Source: Haliotis rubra
Taxonomy: Eukaryota
Direction: 5' to 3'
Assembly: GCF_003918875.1 (NCBI RefSeq)
Contig: NW_025765247.1
Location: 62,001-126,000, forward strand
Length of the DNA: 64,000 nt
The first letter of the stretch is position 1. Each line of letters opens with the position of its first letter. The position numbers and the translations under genes are program-made. Below the pieces are notes generated by a model that worked only from the letters and a program-made list of their open reading frames with translations, was not told where the DNA came from and searched no databases. Positions 20,015 through 64,000 of the stretch are shown here, in pieces.

Positions 20015-20832
20015 ATGAAGATAACACCCATGATACAAATGGAATACTCTTAACAAGAGGTGTTAAACCAAGCCCACTCACTCACCGTAACCTTAGGTTC
20101 GAATCCAAGTTTCGTCATGATCGTTTTTCTGCACCATGCAATTGCTAATTGTTTTAGGTGCCACGCGTGACCTCCCTCTGCGCGGATCTGCACGTGCTGG
20201 CGCAGGTAGACAAGAGCAACGGGATGGTCCACTTCCACGGCTCCAGAGAAGACGTCATGGCAGCGAAGAGAAAGACTCATGAATATGTCCAAGGTCTAAA
20301 TACGAAGCACCAGACACGGGAACGAGCCGAAACGATTCAGACCAACGTCCAGTGGTGGTACATGACCACTCCGGGAGGGGAACTCAAGGCCTTCCCTCAG
20401 TGACCAACATGCTGCTGGAGCAGGCCTTCAAGGAAGATTTCCCATCGGCTACCTTCAAAGTCTCGGGAGGCATGGTCACTGCTGACTTCCGTACAAATCG
20501 GTTCCACATGTCGCCTACAGAGTCGTTGAAGATGTCTCGGGTTGAGAAGCGTGGTGGGACTTTCTGACATGGTCGTGTTAACACTACGCGAAAAGTATGA
20601 TTTGTGTCAACTTGCAATATATGGGATATTGAAATGTTGTTGATAAGTGCATGTGCTTCTAGATATTTGAGCATGTTTGAATGGAACTGTCCCATCTTCT
20701 GTTTCAGCCAAGTTACGGTGTCATGACGTTTGTAACGGTTATGTTTTAGCAAAATCCCGTTTTCTAATGTTTACTTCGATTTGATGGCGATTTACTTGAT
20801 GCGGGTGTCATATTATATTTCCACCTTCATTT

Positions 20833-26211: not shown

Positions 26212-29200
26212 ATGGTCGTGAAAATGAATCCGATAACTGGAAATATCAGTGGGTCAGATACTGACCAGCAAAGGATGACAACCCAGGAGGGGGTTCACTG
26301 GTCACTTTCGGACAGCGAAGCGTCATATGTGAACGTAAGGAAGGATGGGTCAGATACTGACCAGCAAAGGATGACAACCCAGGAGGGGGTTCACTGGTCG
26401 CTTTCGGACAGCGAAGCGTCATATGTGAACGTAAGGAAGGATGGCACTGAACACAGTAAGTTAAAACATGTTTGTATATTTTTGTCTCAGACAAGTGGCC
26501 TTTAATTATCTGTGTTGGTGCCGAAAGATGGCAATATATGCATTATAAACAAACATTCAAGGTGGAGTTGTCAGCGGTGTCCCCGACGACGTGTTGTGTC
26601 CTTTATGAATGTGAATATTTTGGATCCCGACTTGAAAAGAGTAGATGAATAGCTGTTTGAGTCATTCTTATGGCACGGTAATATATAACCGGGGTCCGTT
26701 TCAAAACTCTATCACAACTCAGTGATGTAGTATGTCTGTGCTACAGTACATGATTATCAGTAGACCGAGTGCTGAGACTGTATTCTGAATAGGGCCATGG
26801 GCATGCCAGTGTTAACTTTATGAGAGGGACTTTCAATAAGAAGGTTTTCATTTCAACGGCAGGTAGGATGTGGGTATTACCGGCCTTCGTTTCGCTGCAT
26901 TCAAACATGTTTCCTATCAGTATAAAGACTAAGTGTAAATCCTTGCCACAGGATTAACATCCACAATATGCTGAATACTTCACAGGATAAAAGCGCCGAT
27001 CGTACTTCTCGACGTTCCTCCACGTTTAATCGAAAGTTGTCATTGTTGACAGATGTTCATATAAATAATGCTGTTATTGCACTGTGACGTACATAGGTCA
27101 CGTGAAACTTTAAGTCTTGGAGTTTTTATGTAGCGTTCGATGCTTTCCCCGGAACACATAAATCCATTGTTGTGTTCACCATCATATCAACAAGAGAAGT
27201 TGCAGCGTAATCAGAAATTGTAACATATTGCATGAACAATAGCTGTTTTACACGAGGGTGGCATTACAGGTTACTTGAGAGCGGCATTACCAGTTACATG
27301 AGAGCTGCACTACAAGTCAGGTTACATGAGAGTGGCATTACGAGTCAGGTTACATGAGAGTGGCATTACGAGTCAGGTTACATGAGAGGGACAGTACAAG
27401 TCAGGTTACATGAGAGTGGCATTACGAGTTACATGAGAGTGGCATTACAAGTCAGGTTACATGAGAGGGACATTACAAGTCAGGTTACATGAGAGTGGCA
27501 TTACAAGCCAGGTTACATGAGAGTGGTATTACAAGTCAGGTTATATGGGAATGACATTACAAGTCAGGTTACATGAGATTGGCATTAAGAGTTACATGAG
27601 AGTGGCACTACAAGTCAGGTTACATGAGAGTGACATTACAAGTCAGGTTACATGAGATTACAAGCGGCATTACCAGTTACATGAGAGTGGCACTACAAGT
27701 CAGGTTACATGAGAGTGGCATTACAAGTCAGGTTACATGAGAGGGACATTACAAGTCAGGTTACATGAGAGCGGCATTACCAGTTACATGAGAGTGGCGC
27801 TACAAGTCAGGTTACATGAGAGTGGCATTACAAGTCAGGTTACATGAGAGGGACATTACAAGTCAGGTTACATGAGAGTGGCGTGACAAGCCAGGTTACA
27901 TGAGAGTGGTATTACAAGTCAGGTTATATGGGAATGACATTACAAGTCAGGTTACATGAGATTGGCATTAAGAGTTACATGAGAGTGGCATTACAAGTCA
28001 GGTTACATGAGAGGGACATTACAAGTCAGGTTACATGAGAGTGGCATTACAAGCCAGGTTACATGAGAGTGACAGTACAAGTCAGGTTACATGAGAGTGG
28101 CATTACAAGTCAGGTTACATGAGAGTGACATTACAAGTCAGGTTTCATGAGAGTGACATTACAAGTCAGGTTACATGGGAGTGACAGTACAAGTCAGGTT
28201 ACATGAGCGCGGCATTACCAGTTACATGAGAGTGGCACTACAAGTCAGGTTACATGAGAGTGACATTACAAGTCAGGTTACATGAGAGAGGGCATTACAA
28301 GTCAGGTTACATGAGAGTGACATTACAAGTCAGGCTACATGAGAGTGACAGTACAAGTCAGGTTACATGAGAGGGACATTACAAGTCAGGTTACATGAGA
28401 GTGGCATTACGAGTTACATGAGAGTGGCATTACAAGTCAGGTTACATGAGAGGGACATTACAAGTCAGGTTACATGAGAGTGGCATTACAAGCCAGGTTA
28501 CATGAGAGTGGTATTACAAGTCAGGTTATATGGGAATGACATTACAAGTCAGGTTACATGAGATTGGCATTAAGAGTTACATGAGAGTGGCATTACAAGT
28601 CAGGTTACATGAGAGGGACATTACAAGTCAGGTTACATGAGAGTGGCATTACAAGCCAGGTTACATGAGAGTGACAGTACAAGTCAGGTTACATGAGAGT
28701 GGCATTACAAGTCAGGTTACATGAGAGTGACATTACAAGTCAGGTTTCATGAGAGTGACATTACAAGTCAGGTTACATGAGAGGGACATTACAAGTCAGG
28801 TTACATGAGAGTGGCATTACGAGTCAGGTTACATGAGAGTGACATTACAAGTCAGGTTACATGAGAGATTACAAGTCATTACATGAGAGTCAGGTTACAT
28901 GAGAGGGACATTACAAGTCAGGTTACATGAGAGGGGCATTACAAGTCAGGTTACATGAGAGTGACATTACAAGTCAGGTTACATGAGAGTGGCATTAAAG
29001 TCAGGCTACATGAGAGGGACATTACAAGTCAGGTTACATGAGAGTGGCATTACGAGTTACACGAGAGCGGCATTACAAGTCAGGTTATATGGGAATGACA
29101 TTACAAGTCAAGTTACATGAGAGCGGCATTACGAGTTACATGAGAGTGGCATTACAAGTCAGATTACATGAGGGTGGTATTACAAGTCAGGTTACATGAG

Positions 29201-32200
29201 AGTGACAGTACAAGTCAGTTTACATGAGAGTGACATTACAAGTCAGGTTATATGAGAGTGGTATTACAAGTCAAGTTATATGGGAATGACATTACAAGTC
29301 AGGTTACATGAGAGTGGCATTACAAGTCAGGTTATATGAGAGTGGTATTACAAGTCAAGTTATATGGGAATGACATTACAAGTCAGGTTACATGAGAGTG
29401 GCATTAAGAGTTACATGAGAGTGGCATTACAAGTCGGGTTACATGAGAGTGGTATTACAAGTCAGGTTACATGAGAGTGGTATTACAAGTGAGGTTACAT
29501 GAGAGTGACAGTACAAGCCAGGCCACATGAGAGCGGCATGACAAGTTACTTTACGACTCACTACTTGGATATACAGTCTTCGAATGGCGGATGATACCGG
29601 TAGGGCAGGACACCTGGTGTCATCACTGACTTTGTTTTGTCAATTCACACCATTTTAACAGCTATTTTCCCCTCTGTACCAAAAGGATATGGGGATGGTC
29701 AAGATGGGGTATTGTTTTGCACTGGGGTATAATGTTTAAAACACTGCCTCATAATTGAGAGATTAAAATTTCTCATCTTATAATATCGTTTCATTCTGTT
29801 TTGCTTTGTTCCAGAACGTGGTACTTTCGCTGAGATCGGGATCACTCTTAAAGTAGGAAATTTGGCAATAGTAAAGGTATGAGGGTTGAATCTGACAATT
29901 GGTAATTTCACAAATATTGCTCTGTTTATCACATCTCTTTATATACCACTACATCATATAATTAATGTCTTGCTGGAATATTGCTGAGTACGACGAAAAA
30001 CTAACCTCACTCACTCACTATTTAATGTCTTGGGTCATTCAGAGTTTGTTTTGAATGTGACGTGTATTGGTGTATTATCGCTAACACATAATATAAACCA
30101 TGCATAACCAGTGAGTTATTCTTCATCACCAGGCGGATGTGATTGTCAACTCTACAAACACAGAGCTCGACCTGTCAACATCGGCCATGTCCAGGGCTAT
30201 TGTCAGTGTAGGCGGTGCTATTGTACAGATGCAGTGTAAGGAGCTCTTTCCCCGGGGTATGAAGAATGGTGACGTGGTGCAGATACGAACGTATGTTGGC
30301 AAACTCCGCTGCAAGGAGTTGCATCACTGTTGTCTTCCAATTTATAAACCGCAACAGCGCCATGAAGAGGTAACGTCAACGACGCAGCTTTTGTACAGCT
30401 TTGTATATCAATCTCATCTTCTGCGATACAAACTGTCAAATTTGTTTCTGTAACATCAGTGGTAATGTGTCATGTGTCCTGTCATTAGCACAGCTGTGTG
30501 GTGTGTGCCTGTGGCTAACACCAGTTGTAGTGTGTCATGTGTCCTGTGGCTAACGCCTGTCGTAGTGTGTCATGTGTCCCTGTGGCTAACACCAGTCGTA
30601 ATGTGACACGTGCCCCTGTGGCTAACACTAGTGGTAATGTTTCATGTGTCCTGTGGCTAACATCCATGGTAATGTGCCATGTGTCCCTGTGGCTAACACC
30701 TGTCGTAGTGCGTCATGTGTCCCTGTGGCTAACACCAGTCGTAGTGTGCCATGTGTCTCTGTGGCTAACACCAGTCGTAATGTGACATGTGTCCCTGTGG
30801 CTAACACCAGTGGTAATGTGACATGTGTCTCTGTGGCAAACACCTGTCGTAGTGCGTCATGTGTCCCTGTGGCTAACACCAGTCGTAATGTGACATGTGT
30901 CCCTGTGCCATACACCTGTCGTAATTGTACAGCTTTTGTACAGCTTTGTATCAATTTCATCTTTTGCGATACAAACGGTCAAATCTGTTTCTGTAACGTC
31001 AGTGGTAATGTGTCATGTGTCCTGTCATTAGCACAGCTGTGTGATGTGTGCCTGTGGCTAACACCAGTCGTAATGTGTGATGTGTCCTGTGGCTAACACT
31101 AGTGGTAATGTTTCATGTGTCCTGTGGCTAACATCCATGGTAATGTGCCATGTGTCCCTGTGGCTAACACCCATGGTAATGTGCCATGTGTCCCTGTGGC
31201 TAACACCTGTCGTAGTGTGTCATGTCTCGCTGTGGCTAACACTAGTGGTAATGTTTCATGTGTCCTGTGGCTAACACCAGCGGTAATGTGTCATGTTTCC
31301 TGTGGCTAACACCAGTCGTAATGTTTCATGTGTCCTGTGGCTAACATCAGTGGTAATGTGCCATGTGTCCCTGTGGCTAACACCTGTCGTAGTGTGTCAT
31401 GTGATGGTTTGGCTAACACTAGTGGTAATGTGTCATGTTTCCTGTGGCTAACACTAGTGGTAATGTGTCATGTGTCCTGTGGCTAACACCAGTTGTAATG
31501 TGTCATGTGTCCTGTGGCTAACATCAGTTGCCATGTGTCATGTGTCGCTGTGGCTAACACCTGTCGTAGTGTGTCATGTGTCCCTGTGGCTCACATCAGT
31601 GGTAATATCCCATGTGTCCCTGTGGCTAACACCAGTCGTAGTGTATCATGTGCCCTGTGGCTAACACTAATGGTAATGTTTCATGTGTCCTGTGGCTAAC
31701 ATTAGTTGCAATGTGTCCTGTGTCCATGTGGCTAACACCTGTCGTAGTGTATCTTGTGTCCTGTGGCTAGCACTAGTGGTAATGTGTCATGTGTCCTGTG
31801 GCTAACACCAGTGGTAATGTGTCTAGTGTCCTGTGGCTAACACCAGTGGTAATGTGTCATGTGTCCTGTGGCTAACACCAGTGGTAATGTGTCTAGTGTC
31901 CTGTGGCTAACACCAGTGGTAATGTGTCATGTTTCCTGTGGCTAACGCTAGTGGTAATGTTTCATGTGTCCCTGTGGCTAACACTAGTGGTAATGTTTCA
32001 TGTGTCCTGTGACTAACACTAGTGGTAATGTGTCCTGTGTCCTGTGGCTAACACCAGTGGTAATGTTTCCTGTGTCCTGTGGCTAACACTAGTGGTAATG
32101 TGTCATGTGTCCTGTGGCTAACACCAGTGGTAATGTGTCATGTTTCCTGTGGCTAACACTAGTGGTAATGTGTCATGTTTCCTGTGGCTAACACCAGTGA

Positions 32201-35200
32201 TAATGTGTCATGTGTCCCTGTGGCTAACACCAGTGGTAATGTGTCATGTGTCCTGTGGCTAACACCAGTGGTAATGTGTCATGTTTCCTGTGGCTAACAC
32301 CAGTGGTAATGTGTCATGTGTCCTGTGGCTAACACCAGTGGTAATGTGTCATGTGTCCCTGTGGCTAAAACCAGTGGTAATGTGTCAGGTGTCCTGTGGC
32401 TCACACCCGTGTTAATGAGCAAAATGCCCTGTACTAAACCCACACTGTGATTTATCCTTGCCATGTGATTTGTCAAGGTGTCGATTATACCTGTGGCATT
32501 GAGATGTACTTCCCTGAAGTCACCCCGCCTTAAGGTAATGCGTTAATTGTCCTATGATTACCACATCATTGTTCATGTGTATAATGTCCCTGTGTATAGG
32601 GGGCAGTGGCGTAGCCTAGTGGTTAAAGCGTTATTTCGTCACGCTGAAGACTCGGGTTCGATTCTCCTCATGGTTACAATGTGTGAAGCCCATTTCCGGT
32701 GTCCCCCGCCGTGATATTGCTTGAATATTGCTAAATGCAGCGTAAAACTACACTCACTCACTCCTGGGTACAGGTGTTACGTCGCACAATACATCAGTGT
32801 CTCCAGAAAGCATCTCAAGCAGGACGCAGCACCATAGCATTCCCAGCTCTTGGAACTGGAGTCAGGAACTATCCGCCTCACACAGTGGCAGATGTCTTCA
32901 GAGAAACCATTTGGGAATACATACAACAAAACCCGACTTCTCTCAAAGAAATCATGGTCGTCATCTTTCATAAAGATACAAATATACTTAAGGTAAGTCG
33001 TGTATATTTAATTGTTCTGTACAATAAAACCACGTTCATCTGGATAACATGCTTTCCTTGCGACTATTGTTAATTATACCTGCATACAGTGGACTATACT
33101 CCGTTATTATTATTCATTAATACAGACATGAATTGTTATTCTAAAACTGATTGAACCTTACTTTTGAAATTACATGAAATATTCAGCACCATTTACCGTC
33201 AGAAAATGACATGTTAATTGCTTGTGTGGTAACAGGTAAATAAACAAAATACAACAGAAAATATATATACACCTTTTTCATCGGCGTAAAAAGGTATTTC
33301 AAGACACGTTTGACGGAGATGTTCGATACAGACGATCTACAACCCTAAAACAAGAGCAGATGACGGGTAAGTTTCTTCATAACAGTACAGTTCACTATTA
33401 CTCACCTTCAAATTTGTTGGATGACGGTATTGGTTGTAATATTATCTCTGTCTTATCCGTTGCCTTTGAACTTAGCCCAGTGTCATTGGTTTGGCGTGAG
33501 TCTCATCTATGAGGCAGAGATGTAATTACCATACCAAGACATAGGTTCATTCAACAATAAGTCAGAGATTAGATTGTGGAGCTTCAGCCGAATGTCAAAG
33601 CTTCGAATTAAGACTTTCCCCCATTGTACGTGCGCAGGATCAATTCCTTTGTTTTTAAACCCTTTGTTTTCAGAACACGCCGGCTTTTGTTCCAGAGACC
33701 CCTGTTTCAGAGCTTCCATGTTTCTGAATACATTGATTCACAGTCTCTGTGTCCCAGAATTAATCGATTCACAGTCTCTGTGTTCAAGAATGCATTGATT
33801 CACAGTCTCTGTGTTCCAGCATTTATTAATTCACAGTCTCTGTGTTCCAGCATTTATTGATTCACAGTCTCTGTGTTCCAGCATTCATTGATTCACAATC
33901 TGTGTTCCAGCATTCATTAATTCACAGTCTTTGTGTTCCAGCATTCATTGATTCACAGTCTCTTTGCTTCAGAATCCATTGATTCACAGTCTGTAAGTTT
34001 CAGAATCCCACTTTTCAGTTCCCCATGTTTCAAAGTCTTCGTGTTTCAGAGATTCAATGTTTTAGAGATGCTGTGTTGCAGAAAACCACGTTTCAGACCC
34101 TCCATGTCTCAGAAGCCCTTGTTTCAGAATCCTTGTTATCTCAGCGTCCCTTTTGGGCCAGAATGCCCAGTGTTTCAAGGTCAATCCTATTTACGTTATG
34201 TCTCTGTGTTTCAGAGTTCTTCCACGGCAACGTGCAGCTGGAAGTGAAGCACGGGAACATCCTCAGTGAGTGCGTCGACGCCATTGTTGTCCCCACAGAC
34301 ATCATGGAGGCATCAGGTGAGTAACACCACCCCACCCTCAAGGGTCGATGTCCACTGACCACTGAATTACCATGGACAAGACCATTATAGACAAATAAAT
34401 ATGCAAATGGTACATTTAGGATTATTCATTACCATCATATGATAAGCTTCTTTATATTAACAGACCCGTGAAGATACGGGGTAGAATAGGTCTTCAGCAA
34501 CCCATGCTTGCCACAAAAGGCGACTATGCTTTTAAGAGGCAACTAACGGGATCGGGTGGTCAGGCTCGCTGACTTGGTTGACACATGTCATCGGTTCCAA
34601 ATTGCGCAGATCGATGCTCATGCTGTTGATCACTGGATTGTCTGGTCCAGACTTGATTATTTAAAGACCGCCGCCGGAATATCGCTGAAGGCTGCGTAAA
34701 ACTCAACTCACTCACTCACTCTTTATATTAATAATGACAACATACATTTGTATCCTTGTATAAACACTGCAGGAGGTGGTGAATGGTTTGTTTTGGTGTG
34801 TGGTCCTGTGCACTGATCCAAGGTCACCAATAAGTTAAACTTGAGCAAGGTTGGTCACGAGTCCTTGGATGGTTGATCGTGTTAGACAGTCAGACTCTTG
34901 AGAGTTTCTGGGACTATCCTGCCCCACAACCAAGCACACGTGGCACATGTCTCACCCTAGGAAAGTGAATATGTTGCCACTGTTCACCAAGTACTGAGTG
35001 GTACCCGATGTGATGAGGCTATGATTGGCTATCGTTCTAGCGCCTCACAGATGGGTGTGAAATATGGGAGTTTGAAAACTTAAGTATTCCGAAAAATATC
35101 CATTTAACTTTTTTAAGGAAATTACTTACATATAGGGCAAGGAAAAGTAAACCATTATATATGATTTATGCATAGACAGGACGAAGACCACTCTCTATTG

Positions 35201-38200
35201 TTATATATACTAAAATGATATACTCCTGGGCGAGATTAATCACAGGAATATACTCAAAGCTGGCAAACATGCTACTGCATATTTCATCAAATAATACATC
35301 TAATAACAAATGGCTATCATGTATCGAAGACATACTAATAAAGACGGGAAATAATGATGTATGGATTAATCATGCATTTGTCAATAGGGATTGGATTAAA
35401 TGTAAAGTCAAGAATAGCTTTATAGATCTTTTCATACAAAAATGGCATTCAGATATAGAAGCATCATCAAAGGGTAGGTTTTATGAGGTTGTAAAAAACA
35501 ACACTGATACTGATTTTTATTTACAACACTTACCTGAAAAATATATATTCAATTTGTTACATTTTAAACTGTCAAATCATCGTCTTCCTGTTGAAAGTGG
35601 AGGATGGTACAATATCGATTATGATTATAGAAAATGTACATTGTGCACCTTAGATGTAATAGGAGATGAGTACCACTACCTTTTTAAAACTTTTTAATAC
35701 TTTGTCAATACTTTAACGAAATAAGAAAAAGATTTATTCCTAAAAAAGTTGATTACAAAGCCCTCAATATTTAATATGATTAATTTATTCCAGACAAAAA
35801 ATGTATCTACTTTAATAAGACTTTTGCCGCCATGTGCTCTGTAAATTCAGATAAAACTCCATCATTGTATTATTCGTGTATATGATATCAATGTATGTAC
35901 TTAACCATGTATACGCCCATATGCAATTATTATATATCTCTTGAAAACCTCATCATGCTACATTGTAGCCTTGAGTGAATAAAGTAAAAGAGAACAGACA
36001 ACTTGGGTTAACCGGAGTAATAATGCCTTCGCTTTGCGTATAATTTGTCCACTGAGCAATTTTGAGGTGGATACTGAGCGTTCTACAAATGCAGAGTGTC
36101 TGCCCAGATACCGGTGCACCGTGTTTAACTGAAAGACGTTAAACAAGGACTAGACTAAGTCGGCTCGGTATTAATATAATGTAAGGGACCAGCGATAAAT
36201 CCAGTAATGCAGAAACAGCAACCCAAAAGAACCAGAAAGAAGGTTACCTTCCAAAAAAAACTTAGATTGTTCTCCGAGTCAGACATGAAGTAATTCACTC
36301 AAGCCTGCCGTAACCAACAATGGTTAATACGAATTTATGTTTTCCTCCCTGAGATTTGTACCGTCTATCAAAACCTTCTACCACAGGCCAGCGAGGTGTG
36401 ACGATTTGTTCTATCTTGTACAGTCAAGTCAACAGTATTGTTTTCATCTTTGTCAAGTCCACATATTTTGACAAATATATGTCATAAAATAAAAATATAC
36501 CATCAAATGTGAAAAAAAACCCTCCATGTGCGTAATATTTAATCTCGGTTTAAAACTGGCTGTAAGCCCCTTTTCACTTCGTTTTTGCATGTGTGCTGTG
36601 CTATGTAAATACATATATGTATCTCCTTGTATAATCCAAGTATATTTAAGCAATACTCTCAGGAAGTTTACTGACCGCATGGCTTGCACTTCATACATAT
36701 CTGGGTACAAGTAACCTCCTTTAATTTTACGTTAGAGTCGAGCTTGAAGGCTACGGGAGCCATGATACTGCCTCTGCCCAAACCTCCAGCAAAGACCGTC
36801 ACCACCCCGCGGCAGCCTGTGAAGTACAGCTTGTGGAAGCAGATCAGCAAGTGTCTGTGTAAAGCTGACCGAGACAAAGCAATGTCGCTCGCCATAACAT
36901 ACCAGTCTGGTGAGCCATTAGATATCATTCCTGTATGTGGTGAGAAGGAATCGTTTATGCGTCCTCGCGTTTTATAAATTTACTTTATCTATAAATCAGT
37001 TGAGAACGATACAATACGTTTTGGCACGATACGAGAGAATGTAACCTCAGTGTTTCGACTCTAAATCCCATGGTTAGAACTGGTCTTCAGCAATCCATGC
37101 TTGTAATAAGAGGCGACTTATAGGGTCTGGTGGTCAGGCTCGCTGACTTGGTTGACACATGTCATCGTATCCCAATTGCGTAGATCGATGCTCATGATGT
37201 TGATCTCTGGATTGTCAGGTCCAGACTGGATTATTTACAGACCGCCGCCATATAGCTGGAATATTGCTGAGTGAGGTGATTTATAATGTTGAGAATAACA
37301 TTTAGAATGTTGTGTTATTTCCATGAAGGTAACACACATGAGGATTCCTTCATCTTGGCTTTCAACAAGGCAATAATCAACAACCACGAGAAATTTAAAT
37401 GCCTCCGAGATGTGCGACTTGTCCTCAGTAACCCTGCTGCAGTGTCTGAAGCCGCACAGTTGTTCAAGGATACCCTCAGCCAAGCGGGTGTCAGAAAATA
37501 CTGTATAACGGGTATGGCTCTTCCTGTTAGTTAGCGATGGTTACCATTTTTCTAAAATCCACGAGCACGGTAATAATGCTTTCATCATATCATCTGATCC
37601 AGTCTATATTATATTATATTCGTTTTGAAGTTTTCCGTGAAGATCCGGGTTAGAATTGGTCTTCAGTAACCCATGCTTGTCGTAAGAGGCGACTAACGGA
37701 ATCGGGTGGTCAAGCTCACTGACTTGGTTGACACATGTCATCGTATCCCAGTTGCGTATATCGATATTCATTCTGTTGATCACTGGATTGTCTGGTCCAG
37801 ACTCGATTATTTACAGATTGCCGCCATATAGCTGGAATATTGCTGAGTGCGGCGTAAAACTAAACTCACTCACTCAACCGTTTTGGAGTTGAATTTTTCT
37901 TTTACCATCTTGTAATAATGCTAGCCATTTATTTTACATGTAGGTCCGTCTATCCTGTCCAAGGATTGGTCAGAGGATGTGTGGGATAACATGGACGACA
38001 GTGATGTGACCACTCCGAGGGTCATATCGGGCTCAGAAGCAGAGGAACTGATGGAGATATTCCGGAGCAGTGCCAGAAACACGTTCGATATTGTAGACGT
38101 AGGTTCTAGATGTATTCTTCTCTTCTGATTTACATGTTGGGACAGGGATGGCATAAATGTGTAAAAAGCAGCTGTACAGTGCTACGTCCCCAGCCGAGCC

Positions 38201-39548
38201 AGGATCTGCTGTCTGGGTTCGAGTCCCTGATTAGCTCTCAATATCATCTATGTCTTGGCAATATAGATCTCTTATGATTTTGGAAACGGTTTTGTCGCAT
38301 GTGTTTTAATAATTATTATCAATTTCACCGAAAAAAGGAAATATCTTTGATCTGCATTACCGTGTTCCTTCCTTACACATTACTGAAATACTTCCTTAAA
38401 ATCATACTGAAACAAGTTGATTGTTTATGGTGTTCATATGCAATCCAGCAATGTAATTATCTGTTCTCAGTTGTGCTGATGGAACAATTGTATTGCAGAT
38501 ACTCCGTATCCAGAACAGAGAAAGGTACCAGAAGTACCAGCTGCTGAAACAGTCCATGAACGATAGACCTGAGAGCAACGTTAGACTTCTCTGGCGTGGC
38601 ACCAACGTGGATGATATTGACGATATCAATACACACGGCTTCGACATTGCACATCGTGGTGACAATGGTAAAATATTACATAACTGAAACTTAGTTACTT
38701 TATAACAGTTTTGACATGTATACAGAAAAACCTATCGCATTGAATACGATATTATCACAAAAGATCGTTTTCCAAGAGCAAACTTCATTGTCACATCAAG
38801 TAAATGTTGCTCCATGAAGCTATGAGGCTTCTTTGAGATGGTATAGGCGATTCTACTCAGTAACTGGGTATGCTTTTGAACTGACGAATTATATTTACGT
38901 CATCATCCTTTGGCCGATTGACGTTTCGTTAGCGTGAGGTTCCAATGTTCAAATCTACATGAATCGAACAAACCAAAAATTACCTATTTCAAGATGTATT
39001 ATTTCCAACATCGTGACAATACCGAACTCTTTGATTCCACAAACTGTGAATTAAGTGCGAGGCCAAAGTTTTCCATACATTAACGTCTTAGAAAATCTAC
39101 GTCGGAACGTGACGTTTCAACCATGCCGTGATTATCACTTTAAAAATGGTGACTTTGTGATGTTTCGAAGTACAGACTGATCCTAAATTATTTAACGAAA
39201 TATACTACCCTATCTGCATCTTCATTTGACTTTCATAATTGCATTTTCCAAATCAACTAACTTTATTAATTATTCATAGATACCATCTACGGAAAAGGCA
39301 TGTGCTTCGCCACAGAGGTCAGTTGTGCGACTCAGGACAAATACTGCCATCGAGACTCGAACGGCATTAGGTACATCTACCTATGCCAGGCAATCACCGG
39401 TGAACGCACTAAAGCGGACGAGACGATGGCGCCAGCGATGATCATGATGGATGGACCTCCATCCCAATATATCATTTTCAGAGAAACACATGTATATCCA
39501 CAGTATTTATTTGCAATTAAACAGCTACATGGTGACAATGGTGACTGA
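26212..39548 (+). CDS. Macro-PARP paralog B (PARP9/PARP15-like architecture: macro, degenerate macro, ART), predicted catalytically inactive ART, about 628 aa
   Basis: Exons 26212-26455, 29815-29876, 30133-30369, 32774-32992, 33294-33366, 34215-34316, 36736-36909, 37329-37511, 37944-38098, 38499-38667, 39280-39548 total 1887 nt, all GT-AG and in frame. Motifs ADVIVNSTN, TIAFPALGTG, RIQN, LWRGT, YGKGMCFA, YPQY. Assignment of the first exon is less certain. Confidence 0.82.
26250..26441 (+). repeat. 96-bp in-frame tandem duplication in exon 1 of gene B
   Basis: Copies 26250-26345 and 26346-26441 differ at one synonymous site (TCA/TCG). Confidence 0.95.
27255..29550. repeat. 28-bp minisatellite with 23-bp variants (about 2.3 kb)
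   Basis: Unit ttacaagtcaggttacatgagagtggca. Confidence 0.95.
30455..32410. repeat. 35/36-bp minisatellite (about 2 kb), including a copy of adjacent unique intron sequence
   Basis: Unit gtggctaacaccagtggtaatgtgtcatgtgtcct; about 30385-30530 is repeated at about 30930-31075. Confidence 0.95.
32600..32762 (+). mobile_element. Family A SINE inserted at a 3' splice site of gene B
   Basis: Flanked by cctgtgtatag (32589-32599) and cctgggtacag (32763-32773). Confidence 0.88.
33730..33992. repeat. 31-bp minisatellite (about 8 copies)
   Basis: Unit attgattcacagtctctgtgttccagcattc. Confidence 0.9.
34465..34719 (+). mobile_element. SINE-like family C
   Basis: 12-bp TSD tctttatattaa; internal duplication of the head hairpin. 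Confidence 0.88.
35075..35987 (+). mobile_element. 5'-truncated LINE 3' end (RTE-X-like C-terminus)
   Basis: FKLSNHRLPVESGGW...RKCTLCTLDVIGDEYHYLF; ends in gaataaag. Confidence 0.8.
37067..37275 (+). mobile_element. SINE-like family C
   Basis: Matches consensus; head partly deleted. Confidence 0.8.
37635..37876 (+). mobile_element. SINE-like family C (near-consensus)
   Basis: TSD cgttttg(a/g)agtt. Confidence 0.9.
37944..39548 (+). CDS. ART (PARP catalytic) domain exons of paralog B
   Basis: Three exons translate to VWDNM...ILRIQN...LLWRGT...INTHGF...YGKGMCFA...YIYLCQAITGE...PSQYIIFRETHVYPQYL, colinear with the PARP14-type ART domain. Confidence 0.9.
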
Positions 39549-39685
39549 AATAACTTTGCCCTGTGTAAAAGTAAATGACTGCAACGGGTTTTTGTACATT
39601 CTAAGATTCCTGCGTGTCAATTTGTCTACAGGCAAAACCTGCGCCAAGACTTCAGCATGTCAAGCCTACTCATGTGAGGAAAGCA

Positions 39686-41360
39686 CTGACAGTGCCTGTT
39701 GATAGCGATGTGTATTTGAAATAGTTCATCTTACTGTAGCAGTTACGAAAGTGACAGTGCCTGTTGATAGCGATGTCTATTTGAAATAGTTCATTTTACT
39801 GTAGCAGTTACGAAAGTGACAGTGCCTGTTGATAGCGATGTTTATTTGAAATAGTTCATCTGATTGTTATAGTCATTAACGTGACAGTGCCTGTTGATAG
39901 AGATGTCTATTTGAAATAGTTCATTTTACTGTAGCAGTTACGAAAGTGACAGTGCCTGTTGATAGCGATGTCTATTTGAAATAGTTCATCTGATTGTTAT
40001 AGTCATTAACGTGACAGTGCCTGTTGATAGCGATGTCTATTTGAAATAGTTCATCTGATTGTTATAGTCATTAACGTGACAGTGCCTGTTGATAGCGATG
40101 TCTATTTGAAATAGTTCATTTTACTGTAGCAGTTACGAAAGTGACAGTGCCTGTTGATAGCGATGTCTATTTGAAATAGTTCATCTGATTGTTATAGTCA
40201 TTAACGTGACAGTGCCTGTTGATAGCGATGTCTATTTGAAATAGTTCATTTTACTGTAGCAGTTACGAAAGTGACAGTGCCTGTTGATAGCGATGTCTAT
40301 TTGAAATAGTTCATCTGATTGTTATAGTCATTAACGTGACAGTGCCTGTTGATAGCGATGTCTATTTGAAATAGTTCATTTTACTGTAGCAGTTACGAAA
40401 GTGACAGTGCCTGTTGATAGCGATGTCTATTTGAAATAGTTCATCTGATTGTTATAGTCATTAACGTGACAGTGCCTGTTGATAGCGATGTCTATTTGAA
40501 ATAGTTCATCTGATTGTTATAGTCATTAACGTGACAGTGCCTGTTGATAGCGATGTCTATTTGAAATAGTTCATTTTACTGTAGCAGTTACGAAAGTGAC
40601 AGTGCCTGTTGATAGCGATGTCTATTTGAAATAGTTCATCTGATTGTTATAGTCATTAACGTGACAGTGCCTGTTGATAGCGATGTCTATTTGAAATAGT
40701 TCATTTTACTGTAGCAGTTACGAAAGTGACAGTGCCTGTTGATAGCGATGTCTATTTGAAATAGTTCATCTGATTGTTATAGTCATTAACGTGACAGTGC
40801 CTGTTGATAGCGATGTCTATTTGAAATAGTTCATTTTACTGTAGCAGTTACGAAAGTGACAGTGCCTGTTGATAGCGATGTCTATTTGAAATAGTTCATC
40901 TGATTGTTATAGTCATTAACGTGACAGTGCCTGTTGATAGCGATGTCTATTTGAAATAGTTCATTTTACTGTACCAGTTACGAAAGTGACAGTGCCTGTT
41001 GAAAGTGATGTCTGTTTAAAATAGTTCATCTTACTGTATCAGTTACGAAAGTGACAGTGCCTGTTGAAAGTGATGTTTATTTGAAGTAGTTCATCTGATT
41101 GTTATAGTCAATAACGTGACAGTGCCTGTTGATAGCGATGTCTATTTGAAATAGTTCATCTTACTGTACCAGTTACGAAAGTGACAGTGCCTGTTGAAAG
41201 TGATGTTCATTTGAAGAAGTTCATCTGATTGTTATAGTCATTAACGTGACAGTGCCTGTTGATAGCGATATCTACTTGAAATAGTTTATCTTACTGTACC
41301 AGTTATTAAGGTGTCAGTGCCTCTTAAAAACGATGTCTATTTAAAGTAGTTCATCTCACT
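39686..41360. repeat. 65-bp tandem array (about 26 units): constant 44 bp plus one of two 21-bp variants
   Basis: gtgacagtgcctgttgatagcgatgtctatttgaaatagttcat followed by tttactgtagcagttacgaaa (A) or ctgattgttatagtcattaac (B). Confidence 0.95.
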
Positions 41361-61500: not shown

Positions 61501-63595
61501 TTGATTCTCAGAATTCAAGGTTAGAAAGAGCAACAAATGATGAACCACATGCACCATCTAGGCACCAGAGGCCATTGGGTCTATGGTTATTGTTTGATCT
61601 GAATTCTCCAAACTCAAAGCTCATAATCATGTTCTTATTCATGAAAAATTGTTTGTATTTTATTGGTAAGTGGTACGTTATGACAGATGACTTCCCGTAT
61701 TACCAGCTTGCAAACTGTCATAGATTAGAAATACGCATTGATGTAGCGGAAAGATTCTGATAGTATCACTTAAATTCCAGGTTCAAGATATACAGCGCTT
61801 GTGTGCTGATATTGACGTGACCTCCGAGGTGGACACCACGAACTGTGTCATTTATCACTCCGGGATGAAGGTTGACGCCATCAAGGCCAAGGGTCAGACC
61901 CAGGAAGTGCTGAAAAATATTGAGTTCGTCCAGAAGAACCTAGAAAAAGCTGAACTTCTTCGTCGTCTTGTGGAATGGTGGTACATCACTGAAGATGGTC
62001 ATGAGATGAGCTTCGCGCCCATGACCAGCATGCTGATTGAAGAAGCTTTCTTGATGAGATCTGCACATCCTACGGCAGTAGTGCAGACAGCGACGTGTAA
62101 AGTCAACATAGACTTTACCTCCATGGATATCAGTTCCCGGGAAAACCCCAACCACAGATTCCAGATTATCAGGAAAAAAGGCCCAGGTAGGTTCACAATG
62201 CAATTTTGTCATGTTTGGTATTAATGTTATTTACGTTTGTTGATGTTCATGTCATACCATGTATATTCCAAATGTATCCTGATTGTTCCTGACATTTATA
62301 TACTTGACAAAGAAAACAGCACACCATGGCGTAGTAAAGACCTCAATTTACACCCGTTGTGTATCTGTTTCTAACAAGCACAAGCAAGGGACCTTTTTCA
62401 AATTTCATTATTCACAACGGCGTCTTTTTTGTTGTAGAATTGTACTAAAAAACAACACAACGTAACCAATTTGCATCGTTTGGCTTGACAAAATTACATC
62501 AGATCCAAATTCAGTATCTTTGGAAGACGCAGAACAAAGTATATCGATTATCCAGACTTAGAGTATGCTTCAATCACAACTAATATGTGAATCCGATTCC
62601 GTATAATTCGATACTCACAATAACCACGAGTGTGAGAATTTCTGTGATGTGAGTTCACTTCCGGAACGAAAATCAATATGTAACCAAGGAAATTTTTGGA
62701 CAAGAATGAAAGTATGACACACTGGAAAAACAAACTTGAATCGTAACAAATGGCATTGATGAGTTTATACTAAAGGAAAGGATGTATCGTTGACTGTTGC
62801 ACCTTCAGCTGTGCCTCTCCCTGACATCTGGGAAGACATGGGAGCCAAGGATATCATCGCGCCAAGGATCAAGGATGGACCTGAAGCTGATAAACTTCGT
62901 CAAATGTTCATGTCCAACGCTGGGAACAAGTATGAGATTATGGGGGTATGTCAGTTGTTAACTGACCCAACTACGTAGAATGTTAAATTAAATTGTTTCA
63001 TAACCTAAAGCATAATATATGCACAGACACGAGTTAAAGCACTGAATACATTAATGATGTAATCAGTGATAGAATATTTCTCAATATAACCCAATTGTCT
63101 TTGTTTGCGCTTTGTTCATCTATATGATGGTGGCCTATAGAAGATGATTCTAGCCCTAATCTTCACGATTATCTTTAAAAACTTCTTTGCCAGGTCGATA
63201 CCTGGTTTTAGCTAAACATTGTGTGATGTTCATATTACAAAACGTGAGTATCATGGTCCTCAAAACATGAAAACATCTCAATAGCACGCCGTGCAATAAC
63301 ATTCCGGTGCAATAACATGCCCGTGAAATGTGACAATCACGTCTTTAAAAGCGAGGACATCGTGATTATGATTTAAATATATGGCATCTAATAAGACACA
63401 TCTTCGTCAACCCTTCCTAGGTATACCGGATTCAGCATAAATACCTGTACGAGCAGTATCAGATACAGAAAGAAGCCATGGAGAAAAACTACCCTCACAA
63501 GAGCAATGAAAGACACCTGTGGCATGGCACCAACGTGGAGGCCATCAAAAACATCAACAAGTATGGATTCAATAGGGGCTACTGTGGAAAGAACG
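49560..63595 (+). CDS. PARP14: Macro-PARP paralog C, PARP14-like mono-ADP-ribosyltransferase (leader, KH-like repeats, macro, degenerate macro, KH, WWE, ART); last exon beyond window
   Basis: Exons 49560-49983, 50596-51522, 54800-54876, 55309-55545, 56841-57062, 57429-57504, 57615-57719, 57843-57902, 58458-58634, 59417-59626, 60417-60598, 61781-62186, 62809-62945, 63421-63595 total 3415 nt, open frame, all GT-AG. Motifs LKLGDIA, VDVIVNSTN, SVAFPPIGTG, VEWWY (WWE), LPDIWEDM, ERHLWHGT, GFNRGYCGKN. The symbol denotes family resemblance, not proven orthology. Confidence 0.88.
50223..50481. other. Assembly gap (N run)
   Basis: N bases. Confidence 1.
52108..53980. mobile_element. Non-autonomous DNA transposon (CCCAGCTAACA...TGTCAGCTGG ends) carrying a 52-bp satellite
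   Basis: Short TIRs at 52108 and 53970-53980; AACGTT-rich subterminal motifs. Confidence 0.55.
52500..53960. repeat. 52-bp satellite (about 28 copies, partly scrambled)
   Basis: Unit gtgaaaacgttgtgtcatgacgttaccaatatacacccttcacattaacctt. Confidence 0.93.
54041..54389 (+). mobile_element. tRNA-headed V-SINE-like element (family B) nested in a family A SINE
   Basis: A/B boxes (tagtggttatagcg, ggttcgaccc); central cataccaaaagac...aatatggtac...ctgcctagcgctcggcatt resembles the V domain; 15-bp TSD cctcacatgggtaca (54026-54040, 54390-54404). A 3' fragment also lies at about 15795-15935. Confidence 0.8.
55016..55226 (+). mobile_element. SINE-like family C
   Basis: TSD tattatgttt. Confidence 0.82.
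55931..56096 (+). mobile_element. tRNA-derived SINE, family A
   Basis: Full length; 12-bp TSD tctctcactact. Confidence 0.9.
56289..56437 (+). mobile_element. tRNA-derived SINE, family A
   Basis: 13-bp TSD tccttaattcgag. Confidence 0.85.
58657..59000. mobile_element. Foldback MITE with about 120-bp inverted arms, just after an exon donor of gene C
   Basis: cgtgagaaaagggagaag...catggaaac is mirrored by gtttccatg...cttctcccttttctcacg. Confidence 0.8.
60011..60332 (-). mobile_element. SINE-like family C with a G-rich insert
   Basis: TSD tgtttaata(a/g)aa. Confidence 0.82.
60690..60861 (-). mobile_element. tRNA-derived SINE, family A
   Basis: Reverse complement of family A, full length. Confidence 0.9.
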
Positions 63596-64000
63596 GTAAG
63601 GCTACTACAATCAAATTGTCATCAGGGCACCATTAAACTCAGACCTGAACATTTAATTCTGTTTATTCACGAATACATGACACGTTTTATGGATAACAAT
63701 TTCTTTTATATTCTTTATCATGACGTTTCATAGCAAATTCACGCTCCTTCATCAGGTGAATGATTCAATAAATGATTCATTTTGATCTGAAAGAGATAAA
63801 TAATATAAATAGAAGTTGTTATTCATATAACGTGACATGTATTCATGTTGGCCCAACTTCCTAATGCCTTTCACGAACATTTTGGTTTATACCCATAAGA
63901 ATCCATCGAACGATGAATCCCTAGTGACGGGGCAGTTTAAATTATACGAAATGTGTAGAAAAGATGTAGCAAAATAATGGAATCATTAGGATGTTTCAGT

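Follow-up and report, generated by a model that had tools for sequence, protein, structure and literature searches.

A PARP14-like gene of the abalone Haliotis rubra with a maintained, probably inactive ADP-ribosyltransferase domain

Macro-domain PARPs are fast-evolving genes of innate immunity, and important non-catalytic roles are known in vertebrates for the inactive members PARP9 and PARP13. Vertebrate PARP9 is clustered in tandem with PARP14-like genes, as is the gene that we study here in abalone (Haliotis). We analysed a stretch of 64,000 nucleotides of Haliotis rubra (contig NW_025765247.1, positions 62,001 to 126,000, forward strand; hereafter the window, whose own positions are used throughout), an intron-bearing part of a genome of 1.38 Gb. 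It crosses a group of immune-type genes resembling PARP14 and arranged in tandem, which we call A, B and C in the order in which they lie, and our subject is gene B. This gene is already present in NCBI RefSeq under the automatic name "PARP14-like", with isoforms of 596 and 628 residues. A literature search found no paper that describes its catalytic triad, and nothing relevant on PARP14 in abalone or other molluscs. The evidence presented below shows B to be an expressed and selectively maintained gene, and makes it probable that its ADP-ribosyltransferase (ART) domain is an inactive, folded, non-catalytic module, that its first macro domain is a reader of ADP-ribose, and that its product is an analogue of PARP9 with an independent origin.

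For the comparison of B with described systems, we took the H-Y-hydrophobic triad, and the link between triad and activity, from published tables (PMC2848248); H1682 and Y1714 are the residues changed in a catalytic mutant of PARP14 (PMC11080071). The nicotinamide site of PARP10, PARP14 and PARP15 consists of the Gly after the triad His and of an Ala, a Ser and a Tyr at +2, +8 and +13 (PMC8002165, Table 2), where these positions, and the +7 site discussed below, are counted from the triad Tyr. PARP15 and PARP14 are active mono-ADP-ribosyltransferases with the triad H-Y-L. Inactive PARP9 (BAL1/ARTD9, macro-macro-ART, Q-Y-T) has lost the His, keeps the triad Tyr, and has replaced all four pocket residues (PMC8002165). 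The inactive ART of PARP13/ZAP (Y-Y-V) also lacks the His and keeps the triad Tyr, and in its pocket the Gly and the stacking Tyr are replaced (PMC8002165). The PARP-like domains of plant RCD1/SRO proteins are inactive, with triads such as L-H-N or C-Y-K, and are kept for protein interaction (PMC2848248).

The core of the ART domain of B is encoded by two exons on the forward strand, exon 10 (38499..38667) and exon 11 (39280..39548), the latter being the last coding exon. The frame is open from 38499 to 38667 and is followed by a GT donor at 38668-9; after the AG acceptor at 39278-9 it resumes at 39280 and closes with a TGA stop at 39546-8. Together, the two exons give an intact PARP-type ART domain of 145 residues, identical to that of XP_046558411.1 ("PARP14-like isoform X2", 596 residues; P0123). 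A preliminary description of this DNA had reported an intact frame over 38499-39548 with preserved splice sites and structural motifs, and all of this holds: the exons are open, the sites are GT and AG, the junction 38667|39280 is present in a transcript contig, and RIQN, HGF, YGKG and YPQY can all be read. It had also contrasted LWRGT in exon 10 of B (Arg codon CGT, 38595-38597) with LWHGT in the first ART core exon of paralog C (63421..63597, forward strand; CAT, 63523-5), our comparison copy with His and triad Tyr intact, and had pointed to YGKGMCFA...VSCA and PSQY in B. We read the same motifs at the same places. The segment after ITGE is indeed shortened, by a deletion of 12 residues relative to the paralogs that reduces the loop leading into the last strand of the triad.

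We compared the residues of the active site in B of H. rubra, H. rufescens and H. asinina (given below in this order) with those of 52 other aligned homologues. At the position of the triad His, B has R/R/R and the others have H in 52 of 52; at that of the triad Tyr, B has C/S/C (Cys65 in H. rubra, 39303-5) and the others again have Y without exception. Because every other ART exon found in the genome also keeps both residues, and none shares the Arg or the Cys, the changes of His and Tyr in B are not chance drift. The third triad site is Q/L/Q in B (Gln119, 39465-7) and naturally variable elsewhere (M, I, L, E, T, K or V). The proposed conversion of the triad from H-Y-L to R-C-Q is thus read as stated in H. 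rubra; across the three species the loss of His and Tyr holds, and the Gln does not, the third site being L in H. rufescens. In the nicotinamide pocket, all three species keep the Gly (Gly34 in H. rubra; G in 52 of the 52 others), the Ala at +2 (Ala67; A in 50), and the stacking Tyr at +13, which lies in DKYC (Tyr78, 39342-4; Y in 43, F in 6, L in 3). The Ser at +8 alone has changed, to Ala in each species (Ala73, 39327-9), where the other homologues have S (47), A (4) or C (1). The statement that every residue binding nicotinamide adenine dinucleotide (NAD+) had been lost was therefore too strong, with three of the four pocket residues in place. It had also counted as an active-site loss the Tyr of "ANYS", which corresponds to Y598 of PARP15 (from the title of a PDB entry). 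This is the +7 site, which lies outside the four pocket residues and is variable in the family (C/Y/F in B, with Cys72 at 39324-6; Y 38, L 10, other 4); the pocket residue lost beside it is the Ser. The robust losses of B are therefore three: both His and Tyr in the triad, and Ser in the pocket.

The divergence of B is not confined to these sites. At least 85% of the family share the residue in 31 columns of the alignment; in all three species of the B clade, 10 of these columns have changed and 15 are kept, the latter being mostly glycines and the YPxYL end. Other family-conserved residues changed in all three orthologs are E479, R501, G553 and D576. A redox or metal role had been suggested for the two new cysteines of the H. 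rubra protein. We rejected this candidate, since their positions read C/S/C and C/Y/F across species and neither cysteine is conserved.

The ART of B matches the PARP family of Pfam (PF00644, E=2.9e-16) with 60-62 bits, above the gathering cut-off of 26.7. The match stops at about position 121 of the 199 of the profile, because the C-terminal half of the domain is divergent and shortened. The best sequence matches in the PDB are human PARP15, PARP14 and PARP10, and PARP13 and RCD1 are also among the matches. In the HMMER alignment with PARP15, LLWRGT faces LLFHGT, YGKGMCFA faces YGKGTYFA, and VSCA faces ASYS. An AlphaFold2 model built on the alignment of 55 sequences has the expected strands and helices, with a predicted local distance difference test (pLDDT) score of 83.5 and a predicted template modelling score of 0.82; confidence is low (pLDDT 55-69) only in two loops of the pocket, the one after the first triad strand and the shortened one. 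With Foldseek, this model superposes on the solved ART structures of PARP10, PARP15 and PARP14 with template modelling scores of 0.70-0.77. The confidence of the model and these matches therefore indicate that B has kept the PARP fold.

The orthologs provide information on how long the altered domain has been maintained. When the last exon was searched against 1.84 billion representative proteins, two strong matches were found, with 66-67% identity, and the rest had at most 47%. From the best match we were led to three Haliotis proteins, namely XP_046558411.1 of H. rubra and "PARP15-like" proteins of H. rufescens (596 residues; P0001) and H. asinina (580 residues; P0124). The latter two species have the same A-B-C gene order, with an upstream A that encodes a long macro protein without PARP domain and a downstream C with macro and PARP domains. 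Their B frames are intact, and neither shows a stop, a frameshift or a restored His-Tyr pair. The Arg codon is CGT in all three species, the codons at the triad Tyr are TGC, TCT and TGC, and the 12-residue deletion is common to all three. Hence, within the set of four substitutions R, C, C and Q read in H. rubra, the Arg is conserved in three of three species and the others are not, the two cysteines varying as given above and the Gln being Leu in H. rufescens. Exon 11 is also intact in a genomic contig from a fourth taxon related closely to H. rufescens, and its states there are S, Y, A, Y and L, as in that species. The intron between the ART exons measures about 440, 612 and about 1100 nucleotides in the three species, and the exons remain in frame; blastn alignments of the ART region with both orthologous loci, in which exon and intron are mixed and which we used for gaps and intron length, are gap-rich in their non-coding parts.

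We estimated the ratio of non-synonymous to synonymous divergence (dN/dS, or omega) by pairwise Nei-Gojobori comparison of 143 ART-core codons in the three species, with bootstrap intervals. Omega of the B ART core is 0.24 (0.14-0.38), 0.33 (0.19-0.60) and 0.17 (0.09-0.28), at dS of 0.70, 0.32 and 0.92, respectively, so that all intervals lie below 1, as had been predicted for a maintained gene. Values are 0.09-0.16 in macro domain 1 and 0.18-0.21 in the macro-like region that follows it. Between H. rubra and H. asinina, the ART core has a dN of 0.106 and an omega of 0.33 in B, against 0.023 and 0.12 in C: the ART of B is relaxed relative to that of C, yet it is clearly constrained.

Gene B is also transcribed. 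Three small sequencing runs behave as RNA, as their contigs omit the introns, and a DNA run spans these introns. We compared the contigs with positions 33701-39700; being contigs, they carry no expression level, strand or transcript ends. They contain the junctions 36909|37329, 37511|37944, 38098|38499 and 38667|39280, all GT-AG, and thus support the last five exons of the gene with spliced transcripts. A contig of 390 nucleotides joins 38666/7 to 39279/80, another spans both 37511|37944 and 38098|38499, and a third (39292-39648) enters the 3' untranslated region, which extends to at least 39648. Two RNA contigs differ from the window at few positions, all of them outside the codons for the Arg, C65, C72, A73, Y78 and Q119; because the contigs covering these six codons differ only elsewhere, the same states are present in RNA. 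B therefore combines the features of a maintained pseudoenzyme (a substituted triad, purifying selection, and expression), and the preliminary view of a maintained gene with a disabled-looking ART, as opposed to a decaying copy, is borne out by spliced transcripts, by syntenic intact orthologs, and by dN/dS of 0.17-0.33.

The maximum-likelihood tree of 55 ART domains places the three B orthologs in one clade (support 100/100). Its stem is long, with 1.06 changes per column, compared with 0.11-0.12 on the tips. The clade is sister to the Haliotis PARP14-like proteins P0003 (H. rubra) and P0020 (C of H. asinina), with support 99/97. The root was set at the midpoint for drawing only, and the direction of change follows from the His and Tyr of the 52 other homologues. 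Because the sister Haliotis paralogs keep both residues, the loss of the triad in B appears lineage-specific. The tree contains no vertebrate PARP9 sequence, and it is from the sister group only that the inactive state of B would not be shared with PARP9 by common descent. The nearest ART paralog of B in the genome is only about 40-46% identical, which argues for an old copy. One side observation on the sister group concerns the pocket: in paralog C and in P0003, the nearest paralog, the His and the triad Tyr are present, and Leu stands in place of the stacking Tyr at +13 ('...DVLS', '...KELS'). Because Leu is found there in only 3 of the 52 homologues, C, too, may fall outside the standard enzymes.

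The domain order of B (macro, degenerate macro-like region, ART) brings it close to PARP9. Both have macro domains followed by an ART of the PARP10/14/15 type, both lack a WWE domain, and each has a substitution of the triad His with a presumed loss of activity; macro domains N-terminal to such an ART define the PARP9/14/15 group, and the ART of B groups with PARP14-like proteins in the tree. B differs from PARP9 in having lost the triad Tyr, in keeping three of the four pocket residues, in a second macro region too degenerate for a sequence match in Pfam or the PDB, and in its closest relatives, which are Haliotis PARP14-like paralogs with His and Tyr. PARP13 resembles B as a non-catalytic PARP fold without triad His in a protein of the innate-immunity type. 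It differs from B in pairing the ART with CCCH zinc fingers and WWE instead of macro domains, and its losses are the reverse of those of B, which keeps the pocket Gly and stacking Tyr and has lost the triad Tyr. PARP15 and PARP14 are the best ART matches in both sequence and structure, and PARP15 shares the layout of two macro domains and an ART. Unlike them, B has neither His nor Tyr in the triad and no Ser in the pocket, and its loop is shorter by 12 residues; unlike PARP14, it lacks RRM, KH and WWE domains. The plant RCD1/SRO domains are likewise lineage-specific pseudoenzymes of the PARP fold with substituted triads, but in another kingdom, in a WWE-PARP-RST context without macro domains, and with different substitutions. 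B thus opens no new class of system and is a lineage-specific counterpart of inactive PARPs such as PARP9 and PARP13.

We propose that B goes back to a duplication among the neighbouring PARP14-like genes. A burst of change in its ART would have taken place on the stem of the Haliotis orthologs, where the His would have been lost, and evolution would afterwards have slowed under purifying selection weaker than that acting on the neighbour C. From its residues we infer that the ART no longer transfers ADP-ribose; it would serve as a folded module for scaffolding, partner binding or regulation, and macro domain 1 would read ADP-ribose. Such a protein would correspond in function to the PARP9 of vertebrates (macro-macro-inactive ART), with an origin of its own. 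If so, the outcome known from PARP9 and PARP13 was reached separately in a tandem cluster of a mollusc, where a duplicate lost His and Tyr, changed fast, and was then kept. B and its neighbour C would be a natural pair for asking what the PARP fold does once catalysis has gone, and B may be relevant to the antiviral responses of abalone.

Several observations weigh against this proposal. Inactivity is predicted from residues, and the pocket Gly, Ala and stacking Tyr are retained. Active human PARP16 also has Ala at the position of the pocket Ser (PMC8002165), and the ART of B may still bind NAD+, nicotinamide or ADP-ribose. The dN/dS values come from three full orthologs and from pairwise Nei-Gojobori estimates rather than codon-model likelihood, and the difference in non-synonymous and synonymous counts between B and C is borderline (Fisher p=0.052). 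Among the listed variants between the window and contigs from other individuals, five lie in the ART exons, at 38574, 38577, 38585, 39456 and 39474: S26R, N27D, a synonymous change, P116T and I122V. Of those listed, four are thus non-synonymous, which is compatible with weak constraint or with diversifying selection.

The high dN of the B ART, 4.6-fold above that of C, and the preponderance of non-synonymous changes among the listed variants would also be expected if the ART exons were a recently disabled copy drifting neutrally, with a frame left open by luck. We regard this as extremely improbable. The Arg and the deletion are common to species separated by dS of 0.6-0.9, three species have an open frame throughout, as does exon 11 of the fourth taxon, the gene is transcribed and correctly spliced, and the low identity to the nearest paralog in the genome points to an old copy. 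Given these shared states and dN/dS intervals that exclude 1, neutral decay is rejected. A very unlikely alternative is that the constraint acts mainly through another transcript, such as a read-through from gene A that would yield a full-length PARP14-like protein. Gene A lies at about 1-20400 of the window, with a WWE exon at about 20150-20400 and no ART exons after it, and its models lack a PARP domain in H. rufescens (1392 residues; L024:1-6237) and in H. asinina (1381 residues; L025:1-6741). The introns of B that flank exons 8-10 are in phase 1, so that an in-frame join would be possible if those of A are in phase 1 too. Against a read-through, the transcript contigs join the ART exons to the macro-like exons of B itself, the NCBI models keep A and B separate in three species, and no A-to-B junction was seen in the contigs, a weak test as these were compared with 33701-39700 only. 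Because the models of the two other species also lack the domain, the lack of ART exons in A seems conserved and not an assembly defect. Read-through, if it occurred, would change the protein context of the ART and leave the conclusion on this domain as it is.

Another possibility is that the ART of B is not dead, and that its binding of NAD+ has changed to a mode based on an Arg in strand 1 and a Ser or Cys in strand 2, with ligand binding and perhaps transfer. ART enzymes of the R-S-E class (cholera-toxin-like, ARTC) are marked by an Arg in strand 1, by Ser-x-Ser in strand 2, and by a catalytic Glu in strand 5, and we take the two changed positions of B to correspond by fold to their Arg and Ser. 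We know of no member of the PARP family that has switched to such a signature. In its favour, the two sites are R...S in H. rufescens and in the fourth taxon, all three orthologs have kept Gly, Ala and the stacking Tyr in the pocket, the exchange of Ser for Ala has its parallel in active PARP16, and purifying selection on the ART fits ligand binding as well as it fits a scaffold. However, B has the Arg at the equivalent position but no conserved Ser at the second (C, S, C) and no catalytic Glu at the third (Q or L), the loop leading into the last strand of the triad is 12 residues shorter, and E479, R501, G553 and D576 have changed in all three orthologs. Moreover, the human PARPs in which the triad His is replaced (PARP9 and PARP13) are listed as inactive (PMC2848248, PMC8002165). 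We thus consider a change of this kind unlikely. Its bolder form, in which an Arg plus Ser/Cys pair has replaced the H-Y signature in a pocket under purifying selection, and B is a sensor of NAD+ or ADP-ribose-like ligands or a transferase with altered chemistry, strikes us as quite doubtful; if true, the PARP family would hold, in the B clade, a natural intermediate linking the two great signature classes of ART. The inactive, maintained module described above, with a scaffold, partner-binding or reader role, is the reading that we retain.

The remainder of gene B lies upstream on the same strand. Exon 1 (26212..26455) starts with the ATG at 26212 and was placed by protein-to-DNA matches of P0123 and P0132, with a probable end at a GT donor. 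Exons 2-5 (29813..33365) were located by tblastn with P0123, with approximate boundaries (about 29813-29876, 30133-30375, 32771-32995 and 33291-33365). They encode an N-terminal linker and macro domain 1, which matches Pfam PF01661 at residues 75-190 (E=4.3e-16) and has its best PDB matches in macro 3 of PARP14 and macro 2 of PARP15. Exons 6-8 (34208..37511; about 34208-34303, 36736-36909 and 37329-37511) have checked GT-AG sites, and the join from 36908/9 to 37328/9 is present in transcript contigs. They encode the degenerate second region (P0123 residues 241-400), which has no match by Pfam or PDB sequence search; we infer its macro-like nature from the corresponding exons in paralogs. Exon 9 (37944..38098), with the N-terminal helical part of the ART, is supported by a spliced contig and by checks of frame and splice sites. 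It is spliced directly to a macro-like exon, which gives a protein without WWE or KH domain, and a Pfam search of the whole protein finds one macro domain and the PARP domain, with no WWE or KH. The transcript contigs extend over exon 11 from 39279 to 39648. The second ART exon of paralog C lies just past the window end, on the same contig (G000:C357:126358-126642).

Several minor observations concern the structure of these loci. Exon 1 of B contains a perfect tandem duplication of 96 nucleotides (32 codons), at about 26254-26349 and 26350-26445. Isoform X1 (628 residues) carries both copies and X2 (596 residues) one, which accounts for their difference in length. Because there is no obvious GT-AG pair within 26254-26445 able to excise one copy, X2 may represent an allele without the duplication. 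In H. asinina, a macro-like exon of B (P0124 residues 321-378) is about 90% identical to a copy inside gene A (L025:5122-5289 versus L025:15977-16162), which suggests gene conversion or a recent exchange of exons between the two genes. The introns of B hold interspersed repeats resembling short interspersed nuclear elements, at 34450-34720, 37100-37280 and 37635-37876; in DNA and RNA-like runs alike, the summed depth over these copies is enormous, with thousands of joints and loose ends. Interspersed repeats also dominate the tblastx self-comparison of the window, from which we used single-frame matches alone. Elsewhere in the genome, contig C2633 carries PARP10/12-like ART copies (1384767-1385123, 1419837-1420190 and others) in long uninterrupted frames of 648 and 1168 residues. 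They are followed by repeated Cys-rich units (CFETLVSCAACPSC...), and they appear to form a tandem family of genes with no or few introns.

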